The position numbers and the translations under genes are program-made. A stretch of 63,677 nt of DNA, the filler included, from Octopus bimaculoides (taxonomy: Eukaryota): the NCBI RefSeq assembly GCF_001194135.2. It is 7 parts of 7 records of this genome, joined end to end, with 100 filler letters (N's around TTAATTAATTAA, not from the genome) between each part and the next. Parts side by side here need not be neighbours in the genome. Positions count along the whole stretch, not along the records: positions 1 to 24,182 come from NC_069002.1; 6 more parts are not named here. One strand, 5' to 3'. A model generated the notes under the pieces. That model was not told the origin of the DNA, did no database searches, and worked only from the letters and a program-made list of their open reading frames with translations. Shown here piece after piece: positions 4,530 to 23,742 of the stretch (position 1 is the first letter of the stretch; the number at the start of each line of letters is the position of its first letter).

Positions 4530-4574
<45 letters not shown>

Positions 4575-4818: not shown

Positions 4819-5044
4819 TCAATAAGATGGTAAATTTACAATAAAAATCAGAAAAGCGATTACAGTTTGGTGTATACCGTTATGAGCCATGTGGATCGTA
4901 TCTTTTGAACTACAACGGCATTTAAGTAATATTCTACATACACATTTCAAACCCGGGCAGCAGCGAAAGGATGTTGGACGCCCGCTACCGTCACAGAACA
5001 GTTCGTTACATTTAGGATTAGGTTTATTTCTCTTAAACTTGTTA
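4819..5044 (-). CDS. Paralog A, last coding exon: KR site, 8-Cys agatoxin-like/ICK peptide and hydrophobic tail
   Basis: Acceptor ttcctcctatattctgtatttgcag| at 5045-5046. The exon (phase 2) reads (S)NKFKRNKPNPKCNELFCDGSGRPTSFRCCPGLKCVCRILLKCRCSSKDTIHMAHNGIHQTVIAFLIFIVNLPSY*, with TGA at 4821-4819. It is homologous to 23532-23742, with the same stop position. Confidence 0.85.
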
Positions 5045-5312
5045 CTGCAAATACAGAATATAGGAGGAAATAAAAGATACTATTAAATTCTGGTTTCTAA
5101 TTAAGGCAGAAGTCAAGGAATATTTAGCGAAGAGATTAGACGATAGTGGTGTTTATTTTATCGAGATCGATAGATCCAAAGAATCTAAGGAGACTTGATC
5201 TCACAACATGCAGAACTGAAACAAATACCACAAGTCATTTTTTTCTCTTTTAACGATTACTGACTGTATTTTCTTAATTTTCCTATCAACTAAGTATATA
5301 AATATAAATATA

Positions 5313-5565
5313 CAGTAATCTCTCGCCATATCACGGTTCACCTATCGCGGTTCACCTATCGCGGTTCACCTATCGCGGTTTATTATTTAAGCTTACGTCG
5401 ATTCATCCGTTATGTTGTTTTGCATTTATAATAAAAGAAATATATACTAACTATAAAAATAATGAAAAAATATATATACAGTATAGTACTGTTTCTATTT
5501 CACGGATTTACACCTAATGTGGGTTATTTTGGAACGTAACAGCCGCGATAGTCGAGGGGTTACTG
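5313..5565. mobile_element. Tigger/pogo-type MITE in intron 2 of paralog A
   Basis: Imperfect TIRs CAGTAATCTCTCGCCATATCACGG and (rc) CAGTAACCCCTCGACTATCGCGG, TA on both sides (5311-12, 5566-67), and an internal 14-bp unit ggttcacctatcgc repeated three times. Confidence 0.7.
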
Positions 5566-6940
5566 TATAGCCAGAATTTCATACAAAAATGTAGACAGGG
5601 AAATTAATAAATAAATGTTAATAGTTAGAGAGAAGATAACATTGGGAATATTAAATTTCTTCTCTTAATAATTGTAACAAATATGAATGTATGTTAATTA
5701 GATGTATCTATTTTTAAATACTCTCGACAGTTTTCAATCAATGTCAGACCTATTCATCCAGTATGTTCGAATTACCGTCACTATTTTGACATAATGGGAT
5801 AAATCTAAAATTTGGTTCATTATTCATTTGGTTCAGCACATTTGAATTGATAATCATGATCTATTTGTATTTGTATCAGGAAAATGATTGTCTGTCTAGG
5901 AGTAAATCCTTAAGATCTTCAAGTTGAATAGCATGTCACATTTGTGAATATCGTTTTGGTGAAATTAACACAAATATAGCCCTAGTGTGCTTTGAGTTAC
6001 ACAAAATAATGAATAGTTAACACTACGTACCTTTGGGTATGTTATAAGTTTCCATCTCTGTTCGGCTGTTCAATGTCTTCAAGAAAATAGCTAAAATTGA
6101 TAGTTTCCCTTAATCATATTCTATTTTGAATTGAATGTAATTTATTCCATTATGAGAACAATATAAATTAATTTCATTTCTGCATTCTTTCATAAAATAG
6201 AATAAAACAATTGTCTAGAAATGTTTTGCTCATCTAATTAATATACGAGTAGAAAGTGCTGCCATAGTTTCGTAGCAATTTCAGAATTAATATAATTTCT
6301 AAATATGTCATAATCATATTTGCATAAGTTTTGTCGGGGTTTGAGTGACAATAGTTACACGAAACTCGAAACAGTCAAATCGTCATTAAATCAAGCCCAA
6401 CTATCTCCAACTCACAACAACATATTAAGTAATGTAACAATACACGACGGACACATTATGTATGTCAAAAGACCAAGTAATCATAATTCCGTCGACCGTA
6501 ATCATATATCTGCTGAACTATGGGAGATTCGGGTATTCAACGAGTCTACTAAAAAATATTTCGTGCAATAACAGAGTATGACACTACAATATAAATTCTA
6601 TACTTACCACAGGAAAAAAAATCACACAGTTACAGCAACGAAGGGCGAATAACTGATATAGTGTTGTGGCAAATGCATTTATGTAATTCAGATTCCATTA
6701 CAGTTTCGGTAACAATAATAATCCTTATTATAGTATATTGTAATTTCAAATAACTTTAGTTTTCGAATTATGTGTTTAGGTTCAATTTACTCTTAAACTG
6801 GTTGAAACCTTATTACACTCGATAGCTTGAAATCTTCCTTAAGCAAAAATTAGATTTTTTCCAGCGGAAATCATAAAGCAAAATGCTGCACGAAAGTGTT
6901 ATTTGTTCAGGTTCCTTGTTGTTTATTGATGTTGTTAGTT

Positions 6941-7010
6941 TTATTATTATAGTATTTGGTAAGATCTATTAGTTTTATTATTATAGTATTTGGTAAGATC
7001 TATTAGTTTT
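6941..7010. repeat. Tandem duplication of about 33 bp
   Basis: ttattattatagtatttggtaagatctattagtt occurs twice head-to-tail. Confidence 0.75.
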
Positions 7011-7899
7011 AATACGAATAGTAATATTAGTAAAAGTAATTGTAATATTAGATGCAATAGTTGAATTTGTGTATATTGATGACTTTTGCGCGTTGCTGCT
7101 AAAGCTGAATAGATTTAATGCTGTATAATAGTGAACCCGCCAGATTCCTCTAGGCTTGTCAATCATCTGAGGAATGATACCCATCCTCTATACTTACGAC
7201 ACAAGTTGAATGTCAGTATAATATTAAAAGGGAGGTCAGGATAGAGACTACAGTCTGGATTATGCCATTATTCATCACATGAATTATATTTTGTAAATTA
7301 CAGCAGCAGTCATGCTTTATACTTTTACAATTCCATGTAAAACCTGAACATCAACGACGGCGAGGTTTTAAAGTTTGTATACATCGAAAAACACCCAAAG
7401 ATCGTGGTCCTGCTGATGTCTACAGTTATTGACCAAAAGTCATCAACATTTCAGACACTTAACGATCATATAATTCAATTCCATGGCGTCAACAATTAAA
7501 TGCCCCTGGAGTACAAAAGATCAAGCATGAAGAACGGAATGTGACATATAGAAAACAACACGTGGGTCTCAAAAGTGAAGGATAAAAAGGACGAGTTATG
7601 GGGAGAGCACGAACATAAATTACCTGTATCTGTATACAAGGAAAGCCTTTGTGCTATACGACAGAATTAAAGATGTATAACGCTAATAGGACTTGGGGAA
7701 GTCAAGCGAGATTATGACTGGACAAACGGACAACTATATAAGACGGAAAGTTTAAAGTGATTTAGCCATGAGGAGATAAATTTTCAGTTTCTGATATGTC
7801 ACCTCTGGAAGGTTGAGAGAAGAGTTGGAGGACGAAAGGGAGAAAAGTATTGTGTGCTCTACATTTGAGCCATTGACAGCAACTGATAGAGGACGCAAA

Positions 7900-8030
7900 C
7901 GAACTTGAGATTATACACATTGAGAGGGAAGCAGTGTGAGAAAACCTTTCGGTGAGACAAGAGAAATCATAGTGACAAAAGCTGATGAGATTGATGCAGA
8001 AGTAGAATAATTAACGTGAGGGGAGAGCTT
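7900..8030 (+). mobile_element. Highly decayed PLE ORF remnant
   Basis: One frame reads REIIVTKADEIDAEVE*, resembling the PLE IIVTKADKGNAVV motif. The match is short. Confidence 0.35.
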
Positions 8031-8832
8031 AGAAAATAAAATCGTAATTGCTATATTAGGAGGGGGGGGGGGAGGAATAGAAGGGAAAGTGATTATTTAG
8101 ACCTGGTGGTGTTGTAATTCCTGTCATTTCTTACGTTTATATGTGTGTACGAATCCACAGAGTGCAGATGTGCCGCACATCGATACACTAGCAATGGTGT
8201 GGCTCATTGCGTTGAAGTGAGCAACAGAAGTTTGGCCTGATATACGTTGTAAAATACTACAAATGTTTTGGCGAAAACTGTCGGGAAGCCGATAATATTC
8301 TGGTGATAAATTATATAACGTTGATAAACTTGCAGTTTCCTGTGATGTGAAACTTCTGACTTGTCTTTCTCTTCTCTTCTTTCTTTCTTCTACTGCTTCT
8401 ACTCCTTTCTACATATTGACTCTTACTACTTTGAGAAGGTCCCTGTCGCAAAGATCGGAAATTATTTTGCCCACAAGAACAATACATTACAGACCTCGTC
8501 ACGTATATATATGTACACACACATTTATACAAAACTGCACGTTACTATATTCATTAAATGGGACATATACATTTCAGGTCGTCTCATAAGTTCTGTCCTG
8601 AAACGTTGACGGAGCGTGCTACTCTGTTGTCGAAACTCTAGTTCTCAGCTAGTATTTATTTCATCAACCCAGTAATGTTGAAAGGCGCAGTGAACATCAG
8701 CAAAATTTCAACTCAAAAGAAAAGAAATGCCTCTAAGTATTTTATCCAGAGTGCTAAGGATTCTGCCAACTTCACGCTTTGCCAATACTAAATTATTTAC
8801 ATTTATAAGAGATGTAGATATGTAGTTCTTAC

Positions 8833-8893
8833 CTGTGAGTCATGTTACTCAAACTTACATAATCTCCTATACGTTGATGGAAAGGAGCGACAT
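8833..8893 (-). CDS. Paralog A, propeptide exon (61 nt, phase 1 to phase 2)
   Basis: ttttaatatctctttcag|ATGTCGCT...ACTCACAG|gtaagaac reads (D)VAPFHQRIGDYVSLSNMTH(S). It has the same length and splice sites as 21348-21408. Confidence 0.85.
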
Positions 8894-9654
8894 CTGAAAG
8901 AGATATTAAAATACATATGGAAGCATTGGATGTCTATTTACCAAAGTTTTGTGTAGAAATACACAGAATACTCAGGAAGCACTCAACAGATAATTCATTG
9001 AATAGAGGAGAATGTATTTAAGATAACACCATCTGAAACAAGATGGAGGATCATGAAGACTGGAACTCACATTTCCTCACTCAGACACTTAATATGGCTG
9101 ATCTCTGTTGTGATGGATATTTTTAATACATAAAGGAGGGGATAAAAACCAATGGAGCAATAAAAAGGAATGACTAGAAAAAACAAACAAAAAACACATG
9201 AAACATTATATATAGCACTTGCTGATTCTATTCTGTAATTATTTTAATAATTAAGAATCCTAAAATCAGCGGCGAACTGGCAGAATCGATAGCTCGACAG
9301 ACAATATTCTTCGTGGCATTTTCGCCCGTTTTGCTCTGATATAGGAGTAACAAGTCAGATCACACCACTTGAATTCTTCCCGATTTGTATTATAAAAGAT
9401 TAATCAGTCATAGTGTTAATTAAATGTTATATATTATAGAGAAGAAGCGTAATTCTGTATACTTGGACTATGCGTAGTGTTGATAAATAGAATTATTTAT
9501 TTAAAAGCTGTAATTGCATATAAATGGTGTACATCCGAAAGACCGCTGAGGTAGCGTTATTCATTTTCCTCCTTTCCGCTTTTCTATTTTCCGCCTTTTC
9601 TCCCACTACATTTAAGATGACTATAAAATAAAAGAAATTTCTAATTATACTTAC

Positions 9655-9718
9655 CTTGTTTAACCGAGAGTGTGTATGAGATGAATACAGAAAACAATAG
9701 GACACTGATTCCCTTCAT
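9655..9718 (-). CDS. Paralog A, signal-peptide exon
   Basis: ctatcatcag|gtgcgttATG...AAACAAG|gtaagt reads MKGISVLLFSVFISYTLSVKQ. It has a hydrophobic core, a T-L-S (-3,-1) cleavage site and a phase-1 donor. Confidence 0.88.
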
Positions 9719-10719
9719 AACGCACCTGATGATAGAGAAATATAACAACTAGAGTCATTAAAAACGGAAGCTTTTTTCTTACAAAGAAAGCAAAGGTTTA
9801 CAGCTGAAATTTAGGAAACAATTATCTTTTAGCTGTTCAAATTTATTTCCCTGAAAATCGAAGCTTTATCATTTAAATAATTAGTAGAATGGATAGTTTA
9901 ATTGCACAAATGATACTAATGTAAATTTAATTGCACCAAAATTACTAATGTGAATATATATTTTGGTGAAGATGATGTCTTGGACGCATTTATCTGTAAA
10001 TATTCTCCATAGTGTTAACAGTGGATGAAATACTCCTACTTGAAGTATATCTGGCTTCTATAGCTATATTATTTTTATTTCTGTCTCAAATAAATATGAA
10101 AGGCTTGTCAATTTGCGGTTGGCGGATTGCTGTATGTGAAATGTACGTAGTCAAATGTATTTTCTTTATTTTCTATAACCAAAAACAGTCTTTGCTGCAC
10201 ATTTCACTGTATATTAATTAACATGTTGCACTGGTATCTAACACCATACCTGAATAAACATAATTGTTTGTGGCTAAACATATCATATCATCCTCACATA
10301 GAAAATTGTTATCGACATCTTTGCAAATACAACACATTCTGTTTTAATTAATGGGCTCACTGTTTCTTTTATCTATTAGGGATTTCTGCTATCAATCTCA
10401 GTAAGGAAGAACTCGGCAACAAATCGAAGAATAAGTACGCCAGGTATACGACTCATACCAGAAGAATGTTATGCATTTGGTACATATACGGCAATTTCGA
10501 GAATGCCAACGAGCATTAAAAGCAACCTCTTCTGGATCTGAAATAAATGCATCACATTTCAGTTGGAAAGCTACGTCATTGCCATCCTGGAATCGGAACA
10601 TGTCGATTTCGTTCTACCTGTAGGAAAGTTTCCAGTAAATGTTGAAAAATGTTTTCAAGATTCTACATTCCCCTTTTGGCATGGCATTGTTGACAAACAC
10701 ACACGCATACCCTCACCCC

Positions 10720-10758
<39 letters not shown>

Positions 10759-12200
10759 GCATGTACATTGATATAAATGAGGAGACTCCCCTCAGTCATC
10801 TGTTTGTTGTTTACACACCCGTCTTCGTCTTTTGTTATTTTGTAAATTCTTAATATATATATCTATGTGTGTACATATCTAAGTATGTATATATCTATGT
10901 ATNNNNNNNNNNNNNNNNNNNNNNNNNNNNNNNNNNNNNNNNNNNNNNNNNNNNNNNNNNNNNNNNNNNNNNNNNNNNNNNNNNNNNNNNNNNNNNNNNN
11001 NNNNNNNNNNNNNNNNNNNNNNNNNNNNNNNNNNNNNNNNNNNNNNNNNNNNNNNNNNNNNNNNNNNNNNNNNNNNNNNNNNNNNNNNNNNNNNNNNNNN
11101 NNNNNNNNNNNNNNNNNNNNNNNNNNNNNNNNNNNNNNNNNNNNNNNNNNNNNNNNNNNNNNNNNNNNNNNNNNNNNNNNNNNNNNNNNNNNNNNNNNNN
11201 NNNNNNNNNNNNNNNNNNNNNNNNNNNNNNNNNNNNNNNNNNNNNNNNNNNNNNNNNNNNNNNNNNNNNNNNNNNNNNNNNNNNNNNNNNNNNNNNNNNN
11301 NNNNNNNNNNNNNNNNNNNNNNNNNNNNNNNNNNNNNNNNNNNNNNNNNNNNNNNNNNNNNNNNNNNNNNNNNNNNNNNNNNNNNNNNNNNNNNNNNNNN
11401 NNNNNNNNNNNNNNNNNNNNNNNNNNNNNNNNNNNNNNNNNNNNNNNNNNATATATATATATATATAAATAAACAATATTATTAAAATTAATAATAATAT
11501 CTTCGAAAATATATGCCAACACAACATTATCAAGGTTATCCTAATTGGGGGACTTCCAACAGAACATCTGAAAAATATTTTAGCTCTTCATAAACGCTAA
11601 CAAAAAATAACACCGAAATCAAATTCAGCTTGAGACTCTTATCAATTCAACCAATATATCGATTCCAAAAATCGCTGCATATTCCAAATCGTTGCTTAAA
11701 TTCAGGTTATTTCTGCTCTAGCAGACATATTATCAAAGACATTAAATTATCATTTCATCATTTAGTAATAGAGCTAATTGCAACAATAGTTATAAGTTCT
11801 AATGCAAATTCTTGATAAAGTGGGAAAATGAGAACGTTTTTTAAGAACTATTGAGAAACATAAAGCCGTAATATCCAACAGTATTATTTTCATTTGTTTC
11901 TTAACAACTAATTTGCATTAACCAAAGAACAAAGTCTAGAAGCGCTGGAGTTTATCCGAAAATTACGGAGTAAATTTATGCATATTCTCCAAATACAATC
12001 AATGAGTTGTAAAGCGAAAATTTGTAAATCATTGCGGGTCTTTCTCAGTTTGAGGTTCTTGGGCTGCACACAGGCAACAAACAGCCTAAGCTTATAAACA
12101 CCCATTCTACTTCTAAAAAGATCATCATTACCATAACACTCTATATAATGTTACTACTAATTTACATACACCTACAATGAATAATTCAAAGGTTACATAC

Positions 12201-12345
12201 TTGTAAATATTCGAATAATATTCCTATAAATATAACAGGAGACTTCTCATGCGCAAAGTTCGAACTAGTTGCTGGTATTCATACAGAGAGTGTAAGTATC
12301 AAGAGAACTCCTTCAACGTCTGTTTCCACCAGCTTTCATATTCTT
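12201..12345 (-). other. Candidate non-coding 5' exon of paralog A
   Basis: The block is conserved with 15745-15893, and both end in an AA|GTATGT donor-like site. The signal exons are preceded by an acceptor 7 nt before ATG, so an upstream UTR exon is expected. Confidence 0.4.
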
Positions 12346-12496
12346 CTCTCTTTCTCAGCTAGCCAACACATACACGCACGCGAGCGCGCATGCAAACACA
12401 AACACACACATACATACCTACGCACACATATATATATATACATATATGTATATATATGTATATGGACATATATATATCTATATATACATATATATA

Positions 12497-12545
<49 letters not shown>

Positions 12546-13489
12546 ATATATCAAAAACATGATTAATGCGATGAGGTTTAATATTGCTAACACCTGTGTG
12601 GAAGAGTAATAAGAATTAGTAACTGGAATAAATCATTTGAAACAGTATCAAATTTATATCCTCAGTGACGTCAACGTTCATCACTAAATGTGAGAGCAAC
12701 ATCTGCGTTTCAAGAAGTTAGACTACAGTTTTCCTCAGGAAATTAGGTTACAGATATCTGAAGAAGCAAAGAGTCGTGTTGTAACATCTCTTTTCAACAT
12801 ATCTTACACAGAATTTCAAGGAAATATTGCATGATGGATGGATTTTATGACTGATTACAACGGCTGAGAACTAAGATCTCACAAATGATTCCTGCTGATT
12901 AAAACCATAATATATTACAGTATTTAATCAGAAATCGGTGGAAGACAGGCTATAACTTTTTTATTTCTTGGGAACATAAACGAAATGCCTTTTCGTTTTC
13001 CACGTGGTAGAGAATCAGAATGTAAACCAAAGCAGAAAAAGAAATGAAAAAAAAATTAAGTCGAAAAAGAAACAGCGATGAGAACCGCTGGACCCAAGAA
13101 AACGAAGATTATCTCAGATTATCTCTGATGTACTTACGTTTTTTAAGACAAAATCTCTAACACAGGAGACATAGAGCGAAATGTCATCCATGTATGCTCA
13201 AGGATTCGTGGATAAAAATAAATGTAGCAAATGGATAATAGGTGTTTGCACTTTACAGTCTGATGGACTACAAAAAGTAAACTATTTCTTCGTCTGGGAT
13301 CAATTTATAGCACTTTAGTGAAGAATGGAATACTGTTATTGATAACTTTCGATAACACACACTGATGGAGTTGTAAATTCTCCACAGAATTACAAGTGTT
13401 TTCCAAGCATTAATTGCTAGTATCAGTGAACGACAATGAAAACGCAAGTTGAATGACTAGGAAAAATGTAGAAAAAAGAAAGATACACG

Positions 13490-13650
13490 GCCTGTAGCAC
13501 CTCTTCTAGTCTTTGAAATGGTCGTTTGTTTCATTGGGAAACATAAAGTCTGACATTATTGATACGTCATTGAAGCAATTTGGCATTTCTGAAATACTGG
13601 ATGGTAGAGACGAATATTTGTGGGATGACAAGTGTGAGGAAGTGGGGGAT
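13490..13650 (+). mobile_element. pogo/Tigger transposase C-terminal remnant near the A/B inversion junction
   Basis: One frame reads SLGNIKSDIIDTSLKQFGISEILDGRDEYLWDD, resembling the pogo-family I..SFKKCGISN.LDG.EDD.LW ending. Confidence 0.5.
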
Positions 13651-14827
13651 ATGGATATATATATATGAAAATATATATATATATATCCACATCATTTCGT
13701 GTTCTATGACCTCAAAAACATATATAAAGACATCACATGATATTCTTCGTAACAGCTACTGATTTCGTTAACAAATTGTGTATTTTGGCCACCATCTTTG
13801 ATTTCCACAATATTGAAAAATCAAATTGCAAAATTAAAACTATTTTTGGAATTAGCGTATTGAAAAACCCATACTAAACTAAAATACTATATATTTACGT
13901 ACACTATGAGGCTTTCAATTCATTGAATTAGCATTTACCCTTATTTTCGGGTGAGGTGGGGAAATTGTTCAAACTTCAAGGGGTGCTGTCAAAAGCAGCA
14001 AAAAGAGTTTATATCATTGTTTTGTGTCTCTGCCCACAAGTTTTCAGGGGGTTCTCCAAAAACAAGCTAAAAGAAATTAAAATAACATCCCTCCTACCAA
14101 CAAATGAGAAACTGTAGCCTTTCCTCCGCCGATTTCTGATTAAATACTCATGAAATTGTAATATATTATCATTTTGATCAGCAGGCAGCCTTTGTGAGAT
14201 CTTAGATATCAGATCAAGAACTAAGCCATAAGGACCGTCCATCATGCAGTTTTAAATCCAGAGTGAGGTGTGCTGCAAAGAGATGTTACGGCTCGAATTT
14301 GCTTATTCAATTAGCTATAACTCAACGTCCCGAGGATATCTGGAATCTAACTTCGTGACACATATATTTGGCTTTGACATGTGTGAAGAAATAGCATCGA
14401 CGTTTATACGTGATATAGAAATAATTCCACAATATTTCAAGGAAAATAGGGAGCAATTTTTGCATCAGAGTGATCTTTTTTATAGGAGTATGCACAGTAA
14501 TTCATATGTAGCTAGATAACAACATAAGGTGGTCATAAATAAAAAATGTCATTGACCATATGTCTTCTGGATTAGGAATCACCTGGATCTGAACAACAAT
14601 TTCGATTTTTGCCTCGATATTTAGAAATCAAATAGATGTTGGCGTATAAAAAACAAAAACAAAATATAAACATTTTCGTGTTACAATCCCAAATTTTGAC
14701 GTCTCGGCGTAACATGGGACATAAATTTGATATAGTTTCAAATGACATCTTCTATTCACTATTTCACACAGCAGTTGAGTTACAATAGTTTGTAAATATT
14801 GAATCAAATCGTATAAATCATGCCATT

Positions 14828-14867
<40 letters not shown>

Positions 14868-15613
14868 CATATGTGTGTATGANNNNNNNNNNNNNNNNNN
14901 NNNNNNNNNNNNNNNNNNNNNNNNNNNNNNNNNNNNNNNNNNNNNNNNNNNNNNNNNNNNNNNNNNNNNNNNNNNNNNNNNNNNNNNNNNNNNNNNNNNN
15001 NNNNNNNNNNNNNNNNNNNNNNNNNNNNNNNNNNNNNNNNNNNNNNNNNNNNNNNNNNNNNNNNNNNNNNNNNNNNNNNNNNNNNNNNNNNNNNNNNNNN
15101 NNNNNNNNNNNNNNNNNNNNNNNNNNNNNNNNNNNNNNNNNNNNNNNNNNNNNNNNNNNNNNNNNNNNNNNNNNNNNNNNNNNNNNNNNNNNNNNNNNNN
15201 NNNNNNNNNNNNNNNNNNNNNNNNNNNNNNNNNNNNNNNNNNNNNNNNNNNNNNNNNNNNNNNNNNNNNNNNNNNNNNNNNNNNNNNNNNNNNNNNNNNN
15301 NNNNNNNNNNNNNNNNNNNNNNNNNNNNNNNNNNNNNNNNNNNNNNNNNNNNNNNNNNNNNNNNNNNNNNNNNNNNNNNNNNNNNNNNNNNNNNNNNNNN
15401 NNNNNNNNNNNNNNNNNNNNNNNNNNNNNNNNNNNNNNNNNNNNNNNNNNNNNNNNNNNNNNNNNNNNNNNNNNNNNNNNNNNNNNNNNNNNNNNNNNNN
15501 NNNNNNNNNNNNNNNNNNNNNNNNNNNNNNNNNNNNNNNNNNNNNNNNNNNNNNNNNNNNNNNNNNNNNNNNNNNNNNNNNNNNNNNNNNNNNNNNGTAT
15601 AAATCATGCCATT

Positions 15614-15671
<58 letters not shown>

Positions 15672-15744
15672 TGTATGCATGTATGTAAATATGTGTGTGT
15701 TTGTGTGAGTGTGTGCGTATAAACAAGAAGATGAAGCGTAAAAA

Positions 15745-15893
15745 CTGAAAAAGAGAGAAGAAAACGAAAGCTGTCGTATGCAAGGGCTGAAGTTCTTTTG
15801 ATAACTAACATTATATTATCATCAACCAGTTTGAACTTTGCACAAGAGGAAGTCTACTGAGCTCTTTATATAAATACCGTTCGAATCTAATAA
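15745..15893 (+). other. Candidate non-coding 5' exon of unit B
   Basis: Homologous to 12201-12345 (rc), and ends taa|gtatgtaac. Confidence 0.35.
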
Positions 15894-16561
15894 GTATGTA
15901 ACATTTAAATTATTCATTGTGGCTGTATGTGATTCAGTAATAACAATAGACAGAGTATGTTATGGTAATGATGATGGTGGTAGTGGTAGAGCTTAATCCG
16001 TCTGTTGCCTGTTGAGATCTGCAAAGAGAGAGGATAACCGGAATGATTTACAAATTTTCACTTTACATCTCATCGATTGTATTTGATGAAAGTGAATCAG
16101 TTGATCCCTTAATTTTTGCATGAAGTCGAGCTTCTGTGATTTTTGTTTTATAATTAATGTAAATCGTTTGCTAAGAAACAAATGAACATATTTTGGCATA
16201 TTGATTCTTTAACTAGTTTCTCCTTGCCGTGATTAGTAGCTGAATAAAATAAATAGAGGGGCCATTAAATTAAAACTCATACGTAATATGCTCTTTCAGA
16301 AAGTATTGTATTTGGAAGATGTTGATTACATAATTTTCGGTGTAAGGATCGAACGGCACATATGTTTAACAGCAAACAATTATGTTTATTCAGGTATGGT
16401 GTAAGATACGAGTGCAACAATAATTAATTATACAGTGAATTGAGAAGGAAAGACTGATTTTGGTTATAGAAAACAGAGAAAATACTTTTGACTGTACATT
16501 CTGACGTAGAACACTCTGTCAAATGCAAAGTGACAAGCTTTACATATTTGTTTGCGACAGA

Positions 16562-16607
<46 letters not shown>

Positions 16608-16950
16608 TAGAAGTCAGATAACCTTGAAGTAAGAACATTTCATTCACTGTTAACAGTATGGAGAATATTTACGGACAAATGCTTCGAAGACGTCATCTTC
16701 ACCTAAATTATATATTTACGTTAGTACTTCTGGTGTAATTAAATTTACATTAGTAGTATTGGTGCAATTAAATTAGCCATATTACTTATTGTTTAAATGG
16801 TAAATCTTGGATTTTTAGTGAAATAGATTTGAACAGCTAAGAGAATAACTGTTACTTAAATTTTAGCTGTAAACCTTTGTTTCTTTGTAAGAAAAAAGCT
16901 TCTGTTTTTAATGAGTTTCGTTGTTATATTTCTCTATCATCAGGTGCGTG

Positions 16951-17014
16951 ATGAAAGGCATCAGTGTCCTATTGTTTTGTGTATTCATCTCATACACACT
17001 CTCGGATAAACAAA
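16951..17014 (+). pseudogene. Orphan signal-peptide exon (unit B): truncated duplicate, or alternative first coding exon of paralog C
   Basis: ctatcatcag|gtgcgtgATG...AAACAAA|gtaagt reads MKGISVLLFCVFISYTLSDKQ and matches the C exon at 63/64 nt. No propeptide or Cys exon was found between it and unit C. Confidence 0.7.
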
Positions 17015-17211
17015 GTAAGTAGAATTAGAAATTTCTTTTATTTTATAGTAATCTGAAATGTAGTGGGAGAAAAGGCGGAAAATAGAAAAGCGGAAAGAAG
17101 GACGACCACCAGCACCAGCAGCAGCAGCAACACCACCACCACCACCATCGCCACCGCCACTGCCACCGCCTCCGACGCCTCCGCCGCCTCCAACCTGTGA
17201 TGTTAGTCGGT

Positions 17212-17385
17212 ACTAAAAGTGACGTTCTGAGTTCAAATTCCGCCGAGGTCGACTTTGCCTTTCATCCTTTCGGGGTCGATAAATTAAGTCCCAGTTGCGT
17301 ACTGGGGTCGATATAATCGACTTAATCCGTTTGTCTGTCCTTGTTTGTCCTCTCTATGTTTAGGTCCCTATGGGCAATAAAGAAA
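17212..17385 (+). mobile_element. SINE with Nin/Deu-like core, 5' truncated
   Basis: gttctgagttcaaattccgccgaggtcgactttgcctttcatcctttcggggtcgataaattaag..., a sequence recurring many times in the window. Confidence 0.8.
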
Positions 17386-17399
17386 AAAATATATATATA

Positions 17400-17560
17400 T
17401 ACACACGACGTGTTTCTATCAGCCTCCTTATACCAAATCTTTTGACAAGGCTCTAGGTGGCCTAAGGAGATAGTTGACGACACTTGCCCACGGTGCCATG
17501 CGGTGAGACTGAGCCCGAAACCATGTGGCTGTTAAAAAACTTTTTACCACAGAGGAACAC
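17400..17560 (-). mobile_element. Degenerate tRNA-derived SINE head
   Basis: Reverse complement resembles 56930-57095 (gacacttgcccacggtgccatgcggtgagactgagcccgaaaccatgtgg). Confidence 0.65.
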
Positions 17561-20549
17561 CTCCGCTCCTCCACTTCTTCATGGTGCCTATCTTCTCATA
17601 GATATTCTGTACCATCCAATACTCTGGAAGTGCCAAATCCTTTTAATGGTGTGTAAATAATGTGAATTTTTATGTTTCCACATGAATCAACGACCTTTTC
17701 AAAAACGAGAGGAGGTGTTAAAATCCGCTTACTCTTCTATTTTGCACGTTTCTTCTTGTTATTCCACTTTATCTTTCATCCTGGTTTATTGATACTAACG
17801 TCTAACGGTTGCAAAACACTTGTAATTCTGTAAAGAATTAACAGCTTTATCAATGCTGGTTATCGAATGTTATCAACAACGTTCTTCCGTTCTTCACTAA
17901 ATTGGTCCCAGATGAAGAAGTACTTTACTTTCTGTAGTTCATCAGATCGTTAAGTACCAATTACTGTCATCTATTTTCTATATCTATCTGCATCAATCCA
18001 ACCTTGCGCATGCATGGATGGCTTTGCTCTTTATTTCTCATTTGCTAGAGTTTCTGTATCAATAAACGTAAATACATCACAACCTAACTCAGTACTTACG
18101 TCATTCTTCTTTTCTTGAGGCGAGTGTTTCTCTTCGCTGCTTCTTTTCTTTCTCTGCCTTTTGTAGCCTTTCTTACCCCGATTTCTGATTAAGTACTGAT
18201 AATATTGTAAGCAAGCATCTTTAGTGGTATCTCAGTTCTCAATCCATCATGCAGAACTTATTGGAAATCTAATCGAAGCTCTGCTGCAAAGAGACGTTAC
18301 AGCCCAACTGTGATTATTCTAATGTCTTTAAATTAACGTCTTGAAGAAATCTGTAACCTAACTTCTTGATGCACGGCTAAAGAAATAAAATCTACATTTA
18401 CACGTAATATATGGAAAAATCCAGATTATATTTAAAAAAAGGATGCCGATTTTTACATAAGGTCGATTTTTTTTTATAGGAGTATATTTATTTCATATGT
18501 AAAGCTCAGATACAAAATATAAAGTGGTAATAAATAAAACATTATTGGTTATAAGACTTGAAGATCAGGGATAATCAGGATCTAAACCACAATTTGAACT
18601 TTGCACCTCTGAATCAATAGTAAGTTGGTGTGTAAAAAAGAACTTAAAAATTGTCTCCAATGATGAACATTGGCAGAACCGAGGACATAAATTCGATATA
18701 GTTTGAAATGGTGTTTTCTAATTGCTAATTCACACAGCTGTACAAACTGCGCAGCGATTTAGTAAATATTTTATCTCATAACATTAATCAAGTTGTTGAT
18801 GCTTATACATACATACATACATACATACATACATACATACATACATACATACATACATACATAAATATATGTATATATATATATATGTATATATATGTGT
18901 GTATATGCATATATATGTATGTGTGTGTGTGTATGTATGGATATATATATATATATATATATATANNNNNNNNNNNNNNNNNNNNNNNNNNNNNNNNNNN
19001 NNNNNNNNNNNNNNNNNNNNNNNNNNNNNNNNNNNNNNNNNNNNNNNNNNNNNNNNNNNNNNNNNNNNNNNNNNNNNNNNNNNNNNNNNNNNNNNNNNNN
19101 NNNNNNNNNNNNNNNNNNNNNNNNNNNNNNNNNNNNNNNNNNNNNNNNNNNNNNNNNNNNNNNNNNNNNNNNNNNNNNNNNNNNNNNNNNNNNNNNNNNN
19201 NNNNNNNNNNNNNNNNNNNNNNNNNNNNNNNNNNNNNNNNNNNNNNNNNNNNNNNNNNNNNNNNNNNNNNNNNNNNNNNNNNNNNNNNNNNNNNNNNNNN
19301 NNNNNNNNNNNNNNNNNNNNNNNNNNNNNNNNNNNNNNNNNNNNNNNNNNNNNNNNNNNNNTTATGCTGGATGTTTGTGTTATACATTTCTCATTAGTTT
19401 ACGAAAGATGTTCCCATTTTCTTATTTTATGTCGAAACATTCACATCCACCAAACTGCTGATCTTTGCAACAGTGCCTGACTGCCGTTCTTTGTTCCACA
19501 GAACACCATTTGACCAATTTTGCTATCAGTAGATCGCTGCTTGTATTGAGTTAACTCACCAATATTCTTTGTTTAGAATCGTGTGAATACATTCTGGTTC
19601 TGCTGTAGCTTTGTCATAGCAGTAAAGACAATGCGTTCTTCATATAGCGTTTTTAGTTGGTGTGTGTGTGTGTGTTTGTGGGTGTGTGTGTGTGTCTGTG
19701 TGTGTTTGGTAACAAGGCCATATCTAAATGATGAATGTAGAATCTTGAAGATATTTTTTGACAGTTACTGAATACTGTCCCATGTTTAGAGCAAAACCAA
19801 CATGCATAACCTTCTTCTGGGATGAGACGTATACTTGAAGTACTTCTTCATCGATTCTTCGCTTAGTTTCTCCTTGCCCAGATTAGTCGCTGACATCCCT
19901 AATAAATAAAAGCAATAGTAAGACCATTAATTAAAAGAAAGTGTAGTATTTAGAAAGATAACGATAATAAATTTCTGTGTGAGGATTATATGACACATGT
20001 ATTCAGCAGCAAGCAATTGTATTTAGTCAGGCATAGTGCTAGATTGTTGAATACCAGTGCAACAGTTAATACAATATACAGTGAAATGTGCAGGAAAGTT
20101 TGATTTTGCATAGAGAAAATAGTGAAAATACATTTGACTGAGTACATTTCACATAAATTGACAAACATCTCATAATTGTTTTGGTGCAGACATAAAAATA
20201 ATATAGCTATAAAAACTAGATATACTTGAAGTAAGAATATTTCATTCACTGTTAACAATATGGAGAATATTTACGGACAAACGCTTCGAATACGTCATCT
20301 TCACCTAAATTATATATTCACATTTGTACTATTTGTGTAATTAAATCTACATTAGTAGTATTGGTGCAATTAAATTAGCCATATTACAAATTGTTTAAAT
20401 GATAATGCTTCGATTTTTAGTGAAATAAATTTGAAATGCTAAAGATAATTGTTATCTACATTTCAGCTGTAGATCTTTGCTTTCTTGTAAGGAAAACGCT
20501 TTTGTATTAATGAGTCTCGTTGTTATATTTCTCTATCAATAGGCACGTG

Positions 20550-20613
20550 ATGAAAGGCATCAGTGTCCTATTGTTTTGTGTATTCATTTCATACACACTC
20601 TCGGATAAACAAA
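20550..20613 (+). CDS. Paralog C, signal-peptide exon
   Basis: ctatcaatag|gcacgtgATG...AAACAAA|gtaagt reads MKGISVLLFCVFISYTLSDKQ, with a phase-1 donor at 20614. Confidence 0.88.
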
Positions 20614-21347
20614 GTAAGTAAAATTAGAAATTTCTTTTATTTTAATTGTAATCTGAAATGTAGTGGGAGAAAAGGCGGAAAATAGAAAATCGGAAAGAAG
20701 GAAAATGAATAACGTTACTTCAGCGGTCTTTCGGGTGTTCACCATTTACATGCTTTTACAGCTTTTAAATAAATAACTCTATTTATCAACACAACGCATA
20801 GACCAAGTGTACGGGATTAATATTCTTCTATATAATATACAAATCGGGAAGAATTCTAGTGGTGTGCTCTAATCTATTACTCCTGTATATGATCAGAACG
20901 TAAAAAAACGTAAACGAAACGATACTAATTACATTACTCGTCGAGCTAACGATTCTGCCAGCTCTCCACCGCCGCCCTTAGAATTCTTAATTATTAAAAT
21001 AATTACAGAAGAGAATCAGCAAGTGCTATATATAATGTTTCATGTGTTTTTTGTTTGTTTTCTTGTCATTCCTTTTTATTGATTCATTGGTTTTTATCCC
21101 CTTTATGTATTAAAAATATCCATCACAACAGAGATCAGCCATATTAAGTGTCTGAGTGAGGAAATGTGAGTTCCAGTCTTCATGATCCTCCATATTATTT
21201 CAGATGATATCATAAATACAGTCTCCTCTATTCAATACATTATCCTGTATTTAATACATTATCCTCTATTGATACATTCTTCTCTAGTCAATGAATTATG
21301 TTGAGTGCTTTATTAAAATACCATATGTATTTTAATATTTCTTTCAG

Positions 21348-21408
21348 ATGTCGCTCCCTTCCATCAACAGACAGGAGCTTCTGTAGGTTTTCATGACATG
21401 ATTAAACG
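21348..21408 (+). CDS. Paralog C, propeptide exon (61 nt)
   Basis: tttaatatttctttcag|ATGTCGCT...ATTAAACG|gtaagaac reads (N)VAPFHQQTGASVGFHDMIK(R). The Arg codon CG|T spans the splice junction and completes a KR site. Confidence 0.87.
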
Positions 21409-21989
21409 GTAAGAACTACATATCTACATATGTTATCGAATTGATAGACAAGCAGCCGCTAGTAAGGTTTCATGGCTTGTGTCTATAGTAGAGAGGTCAT
21501 TAATATTGTCGCAATTCTATTCTTGAGACTCTTTCCTAATTATAGTTTCTGCGTAAAAGAAAATATGGAACTGGAAAATATCAAGTGAGACGATCGGAGA
21601 AAATTTTCACGAGTAAAAATTCAATAATATTTGTTTCTATTTTACCTAGAAAATTTATCAACAATTCATGGCTGTCTAGTTAAGAAGTGCGAGCGTTCAT
21701 TCCCTGAACGTATGTCTTCTGCTATACGCTCAGCCCGACCAATACCACCTGAATGAATGTGGTGGAGGAGAACTGAATGGAATTCTATAATATATATCTA
21801 CTATTGGGACCCGTCGAAATTCCACGGAATGGAAAAAGTTAAGAGGACCTATTTAAGAGAGAAAGGAAGATTTGCATTTTTATAGAATTCATAGTTTAGC
21901 TTTCTTTAAATATTCTTGACGTTTGTCTTCATCCATTTCCTCACGTCTTCGACTGCATTGTTTTTTACCTCTTTTCACCATATTTTCCC

Positions 21990-22108
21990 TTTTTTCCCTT
22001 CTGATCCGTGCTCAATGGCTGCCCATTCTTTTTTCCCTTCTGATCCGTGCTCAATGGCTGCCCATTCTTTTTTCCCTTCTGATCCGTGCTCAATGGCTGC
22101 CCATTCTT
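21990..22108. repeat. 39-bp minisatellite, 3 copies, in intron 2 of paralog C
   Basis: ctgatccgtgctcaatggctgcccattc recurs at 22001, 22040 and 22079. Confidence 0.9.
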
Positions 22109-22676
22109 TCCCGAGCAGCTTGCGACTGTATTTCCTGTGAATTCAGAATTTAGACTAAATTGACCTTTATAAGCAAATATCAAATTTTTAAGCGAGCAGA
22201 CGATAAATAACTACACTTACGCGATAAGCAATGGTCACTATGAGAAAAAANNNNNNNNNNNNNNNNNNNNNNNNNNNNNNNNNNNNNNNNNNNNNNNNNN
22301 NNNNNNNNNNNNNNNNNNNNNNNNNNNNNNNNNNNNNNNNNNNNNNNNNNNNNNNNNNNNNNNNNNNNNNNNNNNNNNNNNNNNNNNNNNNNNNNNNNNN
22401 NNNNNNNNNNNNNNNNNNNNNNNNNNNNNNNNNNNNNNNNNNNNNNNNNNNNNNNNNNNNNNNNNNNNNNNNNNNNNNNNNNNNNNNNNNNNNNNNNNNN
22501 NNNNNNNNNNNNNNNNNNNNNNACAGTCGGCGGGCGCTGGTGCCTCTCATTATTTGTTTCATCCTTATCACCCCCATCTCATTAATGTCCATGTCCAGCC
22601 CGCAGCTACTTTATTTCTGTCTGTCTTTGTCTGTCCCCTCTATGTAACGCCGTTAATGGCGAAATTTATTGAAATA

Positions 22677-22965
22677 AAGTAGCTTGGTTACCACAACCAC
22701 ATGCTTCCGGGTTCATCCCACTGCGTGGCACCTTGTGTAAATGTGTTCTACTATAGCCTCGGGTTGACCAAAGCCTTGTGAGTGGATTTGGTAGAAAGAA
22801 ACTGAAAGAAGCCTGTCGTATATATATATATATATGTATATATTGTCCTCCCAACATCGCTTGATAACCGATCCTGGTGTGTTTTCATCCCCGTAACGTA
22901 GCGGTTCGGCAAAAGATACAGATAGAATAAGTACTAGACTTACAAAGAATAAGTCCCGGGGTTGA
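22677..22965 (+). mobile_element. Composite SINE: tRNA-like head, internal (TA)n and conserved tail
   Basis: Head ccacatgcttccgggttcatcccactgcgtggcaccttg...gaaactgaaagaagcc, then (TA)n, then tail atcgcttgataaccgat...gcggttcggcaaaaga...gaataagtactag. Confidence 0.8.
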
Positions 22966-23029
22966 TTATTAACTGACATACATCAATACTCAACTTGTTA
23001 CCTCCCCTCTAACTATTCTTTGCTACTCT

Positions 23030-23232
23030 TTGCACAAGGCCCGAAATTTTGGGGGAGCGGTCCAGTCGATTAGATCGACCTCAGTACGCAACTGGTACTT
23101 AGTTTATCGACCCCGAAAGGATGAAAGGCAAAGTCGACCTCGGCGGAATTTGAACTCAGAACGTAGCGGCAGACGAAATACCTCTAAGCATTTCGCCCGG
23201 CGTGCTAACGATTCTGCCAGCTCACCGCCTTT
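23030..23232 (-). mobile_element. Nin/Deu-core SINE, near full length
   Basis: rc reads ggcggtgagctggcagaatcgttagcacgccgggcgaaatgcttag...gttcaaattccgccgaggtcgactttgcc..., with A- and B-box-like head motifs. Confidence 0.85.
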
Positions 23233-23282
23233 CTAATCTAATTATTAACACTATTTATTTATTAATTACGCTGTCACTAAAG

Positions 23283-23476
23283 TAGCGAGTTGGCAGAAAC
23301 GTTAGCACCGCTACGTTCCGAGTTCAAATTCCGCCGAGGTCGACTTTGCCTTACATCCTTTCGGGGTCGATTAAATAAGTACCAGTTACGCACTGGGGTC
23401 GGTATAATCGACTTAATCCGTTTGTCTGTCCTTGTTTGTCCCCTCTATGTTTAGCCCCTTGTGGGCAATAAAGAAA
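23283..23476 (+). mobile_element. Nin/Deu-core SINE with an internal deletion, inverted relative to 23030-23232
   Basis: gcgagttggcagaaacgttagca[deletion]ccgctacgttccgagttcaaattccgccgaggtcgac...tgtgggcaataaagaaat. Confidence 0.85.
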
Positions 23477-23531
23477 TGTGAAACCATGATTTAATGAATT
23501 TCTTATTTCCTACAATATTCTGTGTTTACAG

Positions 23532-23742
23532 TGACAAGCCCAAGGAAAGCGCTTGCTCAAAGGACGAGTGTTACCAATCTATGCCAAGCAAGTATTGTTG
23601 CGAAGGTTTGACATGTTCTTGCAGTCGCGAAGAAAAGAAATGCACGTGTAATTCACAAGATATCATCCATGGGACTCATAACAGTATACTCCAAAGTGTA
23701 ATCGCTGTTCTCATTTTCTTTGTGAATTTACCAACTTGTTGA
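23532..23742 (+). CDS. Paralog C, last coding exon: 8-Cys agatoxin-like/ICK peptide and hydrophobic tail
   Basis: tttcctacaatattctgtgtttacag|T GAC... reads DKPKESACSKDECYQSMPSKYCCEGLTCSCSREEKKCTCNSQDIIHGTHNSILQSVIAVLIFFVNLPTC*. The phase matches the upstream exon, and the spliced CDS is 336 nt (111 aa + stop). Confidence 0.88.

Follow-up and report, generated by a model that had tools for sequence, protein, structure and literature searches.

An Octopus-restricted cluster of eight-cysteine peptide genes with positively selected inter-cysteine loops

Two genes and their surrounding cluster

The window (the whole stretch of DNA that was analysed, 63,677 nucleotides) was placed on Octopus bimaculoides chromosome CM046622.1, at ~29.23–29.26 Mb. 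It contains two genes in head-to-head arrangement, A on the minus and C on the plus strand, whose exon calls match exactly the NCBI models LOC128250513 (A) and LOC128250516 isoform X1 (C). The spliced products agree at every residue with P0001 (116 aa) and P0005 (111 aa), respectively, and all introns of both genes are bounded by GT-AG. In both genes the first intron is in phase 1 and the second in phase 2, as follows from exon lengths of 64 and 61 nt. The features are as follows:

9655–9718, minus: gene A (LOC128250513, product P0001) signal-peptide exon, 64 nt, beginning with the ATG; the phase-1 intron comes next; encodes MKGISVLLFSVFISYTLSVKQ
8833–8893, minus: gene A propeptide exon, 61 nt; the phase-2 intron comes next; 15 nt differ from gene C
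4819–5044, minus: gene A last coding exon, with the propeptide end and its putative KR site, core, tail and stop
4912–5010, minus: gene A eight-cysteine core
4822–4911, minus: gene A 30-codon hydrophobic tail
4819–4821, minus: gene A stop codon
4742–4923, minus: gene A tail and 3′ flank, 82% against gene C 23638–23818; alignability begins right after the last cysteine
20550–20613, plus: gene C (LOC128250516 isoform X1, product P0005) signal-peptide exon, 64 nt
21348–21408, plus: gene C propeptide exon, 61 nt
22251–22522, no strand: assembly gap in intron 2 of gene C, the sole gap within either gene
23532–23742, plus: gene C last coding exon, with core, tail and stop codon
23554–23649, plus: gene C eight-cysteine core
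23650–23739, plus: gene C hydrophobic tail

The layout suggests a short secreted precursor, in which exon 1 would encode the signal peptide, exon 2 a short propeptide, and the last exon the propeptide end (usually with a putative KR convertase site) and an eight-cysteine domain of 31–34 residues. In gene C the Arg codon of the Lys-Arg pair (CG|T) is interrupted by the phase-2 intron. The cysteine framework is C-x4-C-x7-10-CC-x4-C-x-C-x4-7-C-x-C, i.e., the four-disulfide inhibitor-cystine-knot pattern. The cores run from 5010 to 4912 in A and from 23554 to 23649 in C; the end coordinate given in the initial annotation fell 1 nt short. That annotation did not include the C-terminal tail: the frames of A and C both run 30 codons past the last cysteine into a common hydrophobic end, …QTVIAFLIFIVNLPSY, followed by the stop, and in this cluster the last exon carries such a 30-residue extension. 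Among close paralogs the omega of the tail is ~1, and this extension could be a non-functional read-through that is tolerated.

No assembly gap lies inside or adjoins any exon, and gene A (4819–9718) is free of gaps. Because of the gap in intron 2 of gene C, the joining of its exons 2 and 3 is supported by collinearity with A together with the NCBI model. Another gap, at 14883–15596, has flanks that share an overlap of ~70 nt, i.e., they are contig ends left unmerged.

Genes A and C belong to a cluster of at least 80 kb in which at least five genes are complete and spare exons of all three kinds (signal, propeptide and core) also occur. Over 91 kb, the window and the five loci of the map overlap with 0 conflicts, and the map shows 5 complete genes, additional core exons, one pseudo-core, and signal and propeptide exons that stand as orphans. 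The debris in the window includes:

7219–7383, minus: degenerate second core exon in intron 2 of gene A, similar to the P0007 core
16951–17014, plus: orphan signal-exon copy, 63/64 identical to that of gene C

In the pseudo-core a former TGC cysteine codon now reads TGA, further cysteines are gone, and the 5′ part including the splice acceptor is absent. The orphan signal exon sits in a duplicated block (16200–17102, matching 19850–20702), and no propeptide or core exon was found between it and gene C. The cluster arose through tandem and inverted duplication of small genes, with duplication acting on whole genes and on single exons as well. In eight core exons the reading frame is open and the GT-AG sites are intact, and their eight cysteines are invariant. 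When a profile was run against 1.84 billion representative proteins, the only match outside O. bimaculoides and O. vulgaris was one repeat artefact. The family is uncharacterised and restricted to Octopus.

Divergence along the precursor and positive selection on the loops

The comparison of A and C gave identities of 58/64 in the signal exon and 46/61 in the propeptide exon, the same counts as in the initial annotation. The 15 propeptide differences correspond to 1.5 synonymous and 14.5 non-synonymous changes, CCT/CCC being, as had been stated, the single clearly synonymous one. The poor alignment described for the cores was also found here: blastn fails to align them, and in a codon alignment 51/93 nt are different (55%), against 6–31% in the flanks. 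Both the change in loop lengths (4,10,0,4,1,5,1 in A; 4,8,0,4,1,6,1 in C) and the charges reported earlier (8 K/R and 2 D/E in A; 7 K/R and 7 D/E in C) were recovered. The flanking introns, which had been said to align well, do so close to the exons (94% over the first 100 nt of intron 1, 78% over the last 60 nt of intron 2), but most of intron 2 is unalignable. Identity was 85% over the 150 nt upstream of the ATG and ~69–82% in the 3′ region. The A–C core pair taken alone is saturated, and its omega of 0.74 was not significant (LRT 0.2).

The diversifying selection proposed earlier from this pair found support once paralogs were added, both in codon site models and in the youngest pair. The models were fitted with our own maximum-likelihood code on NJ trees, from alignments of 28–34 codons and with very long trees. 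For the eight core exons, M2a against M1a gave an LRT of 35.7 (p = 1.8e-8), in a type of test that recombination between paralogs can inflate; omega was 0 at 26.5% of codons (the cysteines and one Gly) and 4.6 at the other 73.5%. Five core exons with equal loop lengths, for which the alignment is unambiguous, gave LRTs of 37 (equal codon frequencies) and 34.9 (F3x4), and the highest LRT among 16 data sets simulated under M1a was 4.2. No positive selection was seen in the two control partitions, tail and signal (LRT ~0–2). Along the precursor, the substitutions per codon on the tree were 1.4 in the signal (M0 omega 0.9), 5.7 in the propeptide (M0 omega 1.9, p = 0.03), 9.2 in the core (M0 omega 1.7, p = 0.02) and 2.5 in the tail (M0 omega 1.1).

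The youngest pair of core exons (P0002 and a neighbouring core exon, at locus L001 outside the window) has a dN of 0.42 and a dS of 0.15, with a pairwise omega of ~8 (p = 0.007), 15% of sites different in the upstream intron and 3–5% in the tail and 3′ flank. In the younger pairs, core codons whose amino acid is unchanged differ at only 1/16, 0/11 and 1/9, no more than the flanks. The inter-cysteine loops are under positive selection, with omega > 1; the outcome set beforehand as contradicting this (core dN/dS at or below 1 and divergence not above that of adjacent introns) did not occur with the larger set of paralogs. After duplication, the cysteine scaffold stays fixed and the loops, and more weakly the propeptide, gain replacements by positive selection; the signal exon, the tail, the adjacent intron ends and the 3′ flank carry only the background-rate divergence of young duplicates.

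The same gradient could be produced by concerted evolution, if the cores were old and changed at ordinary rates and everything around them that looks conserved (signal exon and tail, intron ends, 3′ flank) were homogenised between paralogs by gene conversion. Gene A and P0002 share 79/80 nt at the 3′ end of intron 1 and 57/61 of the propeptide exon, with a core pN of 0.48, and the NJ trees disagree from one partition to the next (signal, propeptide, core, tail). Between A and C the NG86 pS is 0.65–0.69 in the core vs 0.23 in the tail, a high core value that is expected in saturated pairs because most of their codons carry 2–3 differences. However, in the younger pairs core synonymous change does not exceed that of the flanks (dS 0.15 and intron 0.15 in the P0002 pair), the codons with conserved amino acids mentioned above hardly differ, and an omega significantly above 1 cannot be generated by age alone, so we consider concerted evolution improbable.

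A raised local mutation rate in the core, without selection, would fit the contrast between the A–C core and its flanks, and hypermutation of this kind was once suggested for conotoxin genes. We find it very hard to sustain, since in the informative pairs the excess is limited to non-synonymous sites (dN 0.42 vs a dS of 0.15 similar to the intron), and the eight cysteine codons are amino-acid-invariant in every intact copy. Hardly any credence can be given to relaxed constraint either, i.e., neutral drift of the core in redundant, dying duplicates. The debris (the pseudo-core at 7219–7383, the orphan signal exon at 16951–17014 and the orphan propeptide exons) and the tail omega are in its favour, but it predicts an omega of 1 and erosion of the cysteines, whereas we found omega ~4+ at 73% of sites and 0 at the cysteines. 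The eight core exons keep their open frames and GT-AG sites, and real decay in this cluster is that of the pseudo-exon, with a stop codon and lost cysteines.

Fold and relationship to other cystine-knot peptides

Taking all the data together, we regard as probable that this Octopus-restricted cluster derives from CCWamide and is knottin-like, with a fixed cysteine scaffold and positively selected loops. Pfam and PDB searches gave nothing significant (best Toxin_35, E = 0.005, and purotoxin-1, E = 0.03), and the weak matches were all to spider or horseshoe-crab cystine-knot peptides. The AlphaFold model had a pLDDT of 69 for the mature part and was poor at full length (pLDDT 54). The top Foldseek matches of the mature model were nearly all cystine-knot toxins, with TM-scores of 0.5–0.6 and E-values of at least 0.7. 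Together, these matches are consistent with a knottin fold of the core.

The most likely parent would be the protostome CCWamide/agatoxin-like peptide gene, of which octopus retains a separate canonical copy (P0013). According to Thiel et al. (2021; PMC8557429), such genes comprise three exons, the first intron being in phase 1 and the second in phase 2, and their peptides contain eight cysteines. The octopus cluster shares with this neuropeptide family (CCWamide in spiralians, agatoxin-like peptide or U8-agatoxin in arthropods) the three coding exons, the order of intron phases with the phase-2 intron just before the mature peptide, and a short precursor with a signal, a non-conserved propeptide, a basic site and a C-terminal eight-cysteine peptide; the motif CC-x-G-[LY]-x-C-x-C...C-x-C is common to both. 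In hhalign, the octopus cores matched the CCWamide/agatoxin-like peptides with a probability of 96% and a score of 37.9. There are also clear differences. The cluster is multi-copy and positively selected, whereas CCWamide is conserved in one or few copies. The cluster lacks the C-terminal aromatic plus Gly amidation signal, has the 30-residue hydrophobic tail (although one O. vulgaris member stops 2 residues past the last cysteine) and has 4 residues in loop 1 vs 6 in CCWamide; in contrast to CCWamide, only some of its members have an aromatic between Cys6 and Cys7.

Such differences would also fit an independent, convergent invention of the cystine knot, or descent from another molluscan knottin lineage. 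A CCWamide/agatoxin-like profile scored just 5–20 bits against the octopus proteins, barely above the spider-toxin Pfam families; the aromatic amide is missing, loop 1 is shorter and A and C lack the NLW motif. The cysteine framework by itself yields an hhalign score of ~25 and a probability of ~76%. Yet the true score exceeds all 100 within-loop column shuffles that preserve the framework (25 ± 4; 0/100 reach 37.9), the two families agree in exon number and in the phase of each intron, with the phase-2 intron at or adjoining the basic cleavage site, and the canonical CCWamide in the same genome is a plausible parent. A convergent origin seems to us possible but rather unlikely.

The resemblance to venom peptides is one of evolutionary mode: the octopus cluster evolves as cone-snail and spider venom peptides do, by positive selection on the loops, and the label "toxin" is applied here by analogy. 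Conotoxins combine a conserved signal, a less conserved propeptide and a hypervariable mature region with fixed cysteines, omega > 1 and tandem duplication; their last exon encodes the mature peptide and is less well conserved than the intron ends. The octopus cluster has the same pattern and the mature peptide on the last exon, but it differs from conotoxins (e.g., the O-superfamily) in having no detectable sequence relationship to them, eight cysteines with CxC...CxC instead of the six-cysteine C-C-CC-C-C, and a hydrophobic C-terminal tail. Spider cystine-knot toxins with four disulfides (mu- and omega-agatoxins, delta-palutoxins, purotoxin-1; Pfam Toxin_7, Toxin_9, Toxin_35) do have the same cysteine framework and a beta-hairpin between the CxC motifs, also predicted in the octopus cluster. 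The matches are nevertheless below significance, the phylum is different and the octopus tail is much longer. A lipophilic C-terminal tail is known in omega-agatoxin IVA. As a working guess, the octopus products may be secreted or membrane-associated ligands directed at fast-changing targets (prey, predator or microbe).

Pfam Agouti, a vertebrate family with ten cysteines vs eight in the cluster, had zero matches among the cluster proteins and weak ones to CCWamide; the octopus CCWamide is named "Agouti domain-containing" in UniProt. The AgRP/agouti cystine-knot domain carries its receptor-binding RFF triplet on the loop between the CxC motifs. At this position, in the loop separating the two CxC motifs, gene A has RILLK and gene C SREEKK.

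Genes A and C and their cluster

The stretch that carries genes A and C was placed at CM046622.1:29,231,489-29,255,670 (record orientation, assembly GCA_001194135.2), from the gene coordinates and from a merge with five loci of the same cluster, which joined it with 0 conflicts. The spliced product of gene A is 100% identical (116/116 residues) to that of the NCBI model LOC128250513, an "uncharacterized protein", and the product of gene C is identical to isoform X1 of LOC128250516 (P0005); the last exon of C had surfaced already in an ORF listing. All introns of both genes are GT-AG, first in phase 1 and then in phase 2. Every assembly gap lies clear of the exons, and gene A has no gap at all. 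The one at 22251-22522 lies inside intron 2 of C and therefore leaves the reading frame unaffected; for the linkage of exons 2 and 3 of this gene the basis is the NCBI model, together with collinearity with A.

Exons of the cluster (positions of the window, or of L001, a locus of the same cluster outside it)
9718-9655, minus strand: signal exon of gene A, 64 nt
8893-8833, minus strand: propeptide exon of gene A, 61 nt
5044-4819, minus strand: last exon of gene A
20550-20613, plus strand: signal exon of gene C
21348-21408, plus strand: propeptide exon of gene C
23532-23742, plus strand: last exon of gene C
16951-17014, plus strand: orphan signal exon, 63/64 identical to the signal exon of C
7219-7383, minus strand: decayed core exon in intron 2 of A, closest to the P0007 core
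L001:21904-22123: extra core exon with eight cysteines, tail and stop codon intact
L001:26885-27104: extra core exon with eight cysteines, tail and stop codon intact

A and C stand head to head within an inverted duplication, in which 10481-8805 on the side of A and 19796-21436 on the side of C match at 79%, and 4923-4742 and 23638-23818 at 82%. The 3′ flanks of the two genes also contain a 93% inverted repeat (3995-4192 against 23931-24127), so that the duplication reaches beyond both of them. The 3′ flank of A is lengthened by the microsatellites (AGT)15 and (GAG)8 at 4531-4611.

By profile search we found more members on the same chromosome (LOC128250514, -517, -516 isoform X2, -536 and -541, all uncharacterised) together with two mis-merged gene models of Octopus vulgaris. 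Outside Octopus, the profile search of 1.84 billion representative proteins returned none but one low-complexity artefact, and in the literature on octopus knottins, cephalopod CCWamide and the LOC identifiers we found no description of the family. Exon modules were mapped across 91 kb, giving five complete genes: P0007 and C on the plus strand, and P0002, P0004 and A on the minus strand. There are, besides, two orphan copies of the propeptide exon. Both extra core exons of L001 are downstream of the lone signal exon of LOC128250514 and in no annotated product retrieved; the one at L001:26885-27104 has its own propeptide-exon copy and is without a signal exon in the sequenced parts. The orphan signal exon of the window belongs to a block (16200-17102) that duplicates part of C from its 5′ side, namely the upstream region, the signal exon and ~90 nt of intron, and that terminates at a (ACCACCAGC)n repeat and a repeat element with no propeptide or core exon after it. 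This exon could be a spare first coding exon of C, or debris. The core exon in intron 2 of A is decayed: a cysteine codon has changed from TGC to an in-frame TGA, more cysteines are lost, and the 5′ part and the acceptor are missing.

A polypyrimidine tract followed by CAG is found 7 nt 5′ of the ATG in every signal exon (9719-9745 and 20523-20549 in the window), and the LOC128250541 proteins read "...SRCV-MKG" across this CAG site. The sequence suggests a further, non-coding leader exon upstream of the signal exon; a search for it gave a single weak match, at ~21502 (E = 0.006).

Divergence and selection in the eight-cysteine core

The initial annotation had described, from counts by eye, a conserved signal exon, a diverged propeptide and hypervariable loops between the cysteines. 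Its counts were reproduced: A and C are identical at 58/64 positions of the signal exon and 46/61 of the propeptide exon, the 15 differences of the latter being 1.5 synonymous and 14.5 non-synonymous; the cores have 8 K/R and 2 D/E in A (net charge +6) and 7 K/R and 7 D/E in C (net charge 0); RILLK in A corresponds to SREEKK in C as the last loop, and loop lengths change from 4,10,0,4,1,5,1 in A to 4,8,0,4,1,6,1 in C. Between these two cores blastn finds no alignment, and 51/93 nt differ when they are aligned by codons. The flanking introns, said to align well, do so near the exons (69–94% identity) but not further away. The gradient that it described is seen in the tree lengths per codon, 1.4 for the signal, 5.7 for the propeptide and 9–13 for the core. 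Overlooked in that reading was that the frames of A and C stay open for 30 codons beyond the last cysteine, continuing as SSKDTIHMAHNGIHQTVIAFLIFIVNLPSY and NSQDIIHGTHNSILQSVIAVLIFFVNLPTC, respectively, up to the stop codon. This hydrophobic tail is present in the NCBI models.

Diversifying selection on the core, which had been proposed from A and C, is supported once more paralogs are included. The pairwise dN/dS of the A and C cores (NG86 0.45; ML omega 0.74, LRT 0.2) was set aside: at ~3 substitutions per codon this pair is saturated and uninformative on its own. The youngest pair of core exons is formed by the P0002 core and an exon 970 bp upstream of it. Their cores, 33 codons long, differ by 25.2 non-synonymous and 2.8 synonymous changes (dN 0.42, dS 0.15), giving an omega of ~8 (LRT 7.3, p = 0.007). 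Their tails differ at 3 of 90 nt, and divergence is 5–10% in the 3′ flank and 15% in the upstream intron; the intron divergence is lower than the non-synonymous divergence of the core (p = 0.001), a comparison that the initial annotation had proposed.

For the larger sets we used our own codon-model code (M0, M1a and M2a) on NJ trees.

Codon-model tests on the core (data set; M0 omega, with p against 1; LRT of M2a vs M1a; p)
Eight cores, all columns; 1.71 (p = 0.02); 35.7; 1.8e-8
Eight cores, ungapped columns only; 1.47 (p = 0.13); 27.6; 1e-6
Five cores with identical loop lengths; 2.5 (p = 0.003); 37.0; 9e-9
Same five cores, F3x4; 2.3 (p = 0.012); 34.9; 2.6e-8

With the eight cores M2a puts 26.5% of codons at omega 0 and 73.5% at omega 4.6, and data sets simulated under the fitted M1a (n = 16) gave LRT values of ≤4.2. 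The control partitions had no selection signal, omega being 0.9–1.1 (LRT 0.5–2) for the tail, with a tree length of 2.5 per codon, and 0.9 (LRT 0) for the signal. The propeptide had an omega of 1.9 (p = 0.03).

The same contrast between core and flanks could be sought in hypermutation of the core, or in old cores set between flanks that have since been homogenised. Some conversion or exon shuffling does occur in the cluster, as the mosaic relationships indicate. However, core codons that encode the same amino acid in the younger pairs differ in only 1/16, 0/11 and 1/9 cases, not above the flank rate, which argues against both hypermutation and homogenised flanks. The omega above 1 limited to the mature region, the fixed cysteine scaffold and the slower signal and flanks of the cluster genes make up a pattern of the venom-peptide type, a conserved signal with a hypervariable mature region being the textbook pattern for such peptides. 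The word "toxin" would apply to the cluster peptides only by analogy.

Predicted fold and comparison with CCWamide and agatoxin-like peptides

The hydrophobic N-terminus, MKGISVLLF(C/S)VFISY, was taken as a signal peptide by inspection. A KR pair precedes the first cysteine by 2–7 residues in A, P0002, P0003, P0006, P0008 and the O. vulgaris member Ov10. In C it falls on the junction of exons 2 and 3, and it is missing from P0004 and P0007. The framework is C-x4-C-x7-10-CC-x4-C-x-C-x4-7-C-x-C, with the eight cysteines invariant in 12/12 cores. A Pfam scan of the full-length proteins gave nothing significant, the sub-threshold matches being to spider-toxin families only (Toxin_35 PF10530, E 0.0052; Toxin_9 PF02819, 0.036; Toxin_7 PF05980, 0.067), none of which reached the gathering threshold. 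Similarly, a profile search of PDB sequences matched four-disulfide knottins only, at E 0.03–2: purotoxin-1, delta-palutoxins, agelenin, mu- and omega-agatoxins and tachystatin A. For the mature part of A, AlphaFold2 predicted a hairpin between the CxC motifs (residues 28–32 and 36–40; pLDDT 68.8), and nearly all the top Foldseek matches of this model were cystine-knot toxins or peptides, with TM 0.5–0.6 and E ≥0.7, none significant. The full-length model was too poor (pLDDT 54) and was set aside.

Thiel et al. (2021; PMC8557429) placed spiralian CCWamides and arthropod agatoxin-like peptides in one family, on the basis of the eight cysteines, the layout of signal, propeptide, cleavage site and mature peptide, and a gene of three exons in which the first intron is in phase 1 and the second in phase 2, where it splits a basic codon. 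The cluster genes appear to share the short precursor layout, judged from sequence, with a signal, a non-conserved propeptide, a basic site and a C-terminal mature peptide. The arrangement C...C...CC...C-x-C...C-x-C is also common to both, and the octopus cysteines align column for column with 20 CCWamide/agatoxin-like sequences. The three-exon, phase 1/2 structure is found in the cluster as well: in A, C, P0002 and Ov10 the exon lengths of 64 and 61 nt set the two phases, and the exons of P0004 and P0007 are shorter with unchanged intron phases. In C the phase-2 intron splits an Arg codon (CG|T) after Lys, reading "IKR", for comparison with the Lottia junction "...TIKR|R" (PMC8557429). In the other genes a Ser codon (AG|T) is split, and KR follows some codons later.

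The amidated aromatic C-terminus of CCWamide/agatoxin-like peptides (...W/F-G-(K/R)), however, was found in no cluster member. The cluster proteins end in ...NLPSY, ...NLPTC or ...AILY, and CRCKQ in O. vulgaris, whereas P0013, the canonical CCWamide of O. bimaculoides, has the C-terminus ...CKCNLWMQNCRCVNKLWGG (KLWGG). Between Cys6 and Cys7 there is a Phe in P0002 (IFSFI), P0004 (NFIFR), the alternative P0002 core (AFAQS) and the O. vulgaris member P0009 (IPFKG); the aromatic of this loop (N-L/F-W motif) is absent from A (RILLK), C (SREEKK), P0003 and P0007. When the 12 octopus cores were compared by hhalign with the 20 CCWamide/agatoxin-like peptides, the probability was 96% and the score 37.9, a value reached by 0/100 shuffles that preserved the cysteine framework (25 ± 4). 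HMM scores were just 5–20 bits, and a database-wide profile search with the octopus family recovered no CCWamide/agatoxin-like protein. Given these low scores and the missing amidated aromatic terminus, we regard the cluster as a divergent offshoot, outside the family proper.

The hydrophobic tail, possible alternative cores and repeats

The tail is conserved in 7/8 sequenced tail-bearing core exons, with the hydrophobic end (V/I)IAFLIFIVNL. Among close paralogs its omega is ~1, the background rate, and against the most distant member pN/pS is 0.3–0.5. An O. vulgaris paralog on a different chromosome (L006:14866-14989, OX597817.1) has no tail and stops at CRCKQ; its deposited model, P0010, leaves this exon by a splice that appears to be wrong. 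On an origin of the tail by loss of a stop codon into a former 3′ UTR, the alignment of the 3′ region of this tail-less paralog with A, no better than with shuffled sequence, speaks neither for nor against. Candidate roles for the tail are those of membrane anchor or GPI signal, of C-terminal propeptide and of lipophilic tail; it may also be tolerated read-through. In the low-confidence full-length model it is predicted as helical. Features of the GPI type, seen by inspection, comprise an N-x-G triplet in P0002 and P0004, inconsistent elsewhere, and a spacer of only ~4 residues; for a lipophilic tail, omega-agatoxin IVA is one possible parallel.

What emerges is a hitherto undescribed variant, restricted to one lineage, of a familiar kind of gene family. 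A wider reading, to which we give little credence, is that of a cephalopod invention from a CCWamide/agatoxin-like gene, with a shared leader, alternative hypervariable core exons and knottins tethered by the tail. In this view, splicing could join the one leader (the exons for signal and propeptide) to alternative core exons and so yield a combinatorial repertoire, and the tail could hold the knottins at the membrane, by GPI or as a tail anchor, as natural "tethered toxins". The analogue would be the lynx1/Ly6 prototoxins, which modulate the animal's own ion channels or receptors. Alternative terminal exons, and with them this wider reading, are hinted at by the NCBI isoforms X2 and X3 of LOC128250541, which have the same signal and propeptide with different cores. 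The wider reading is hinted at too by the three intact core exons of L001 3′ of one signal exon, the third with its own propeptide-exon copy, and by the dead second core in intron 2 of A. We know of no counterpart, among other knottin precursors, of the conserved hydrophobic tail or of the possible alternative terminal exons.

On confirmation, the cluster would be another independent example, after the known one of spiders, in which the conserved protostome CCWamide/agatoxin-like neuropeptide scaffold was duplicated and rapidly diversified, here in a cephalopod. To our knowledge, the disulfide-rich peptide arsenals of cephalopods are poorly known. The at least 10 natural loop variants on one scaffold are a ready set for screening on ion channels and receptors. 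CCWamide and agatoxin-like peptides have no known receptor (PMC8557429), and the octopus family offers a genomic handle on that question.

The stretch that carries genes A and C has a G+C content of ~31%, abundant (TA)n and (TATG)n microsatellites and five N runs, and Rfam and tRNA scans of it gave no match. On both sides of the gap at 14883-15596, ~70 nt (14811-14881 and 15597-15665) are ~96% identical, including the unique sequence GTATAAATCATGCCATTGG; this gap is probably formed by two overlapping, unmerged contig ends at a microsatellite. The other gaps adjoin microsatellites. In intron 2 of C, just before the gap at 22251-22522, there is a perfect 39-nt tandem repeat (21989-22109, 3.1 copies, 100% identity). 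An element of ~160 nt, probably transposable, is present in three copies 92–96% identical, one of them inverted (17222-17385, 23313-23476 and 23064-23164), two of which are in intron 2 of C near the core exon; it had no tRNA or Rfam match. At 250-900 the G+C content is ~43%, higher than elsewhere in this stretch; open frames overlap there on both strands, and their translations are of low complexity.
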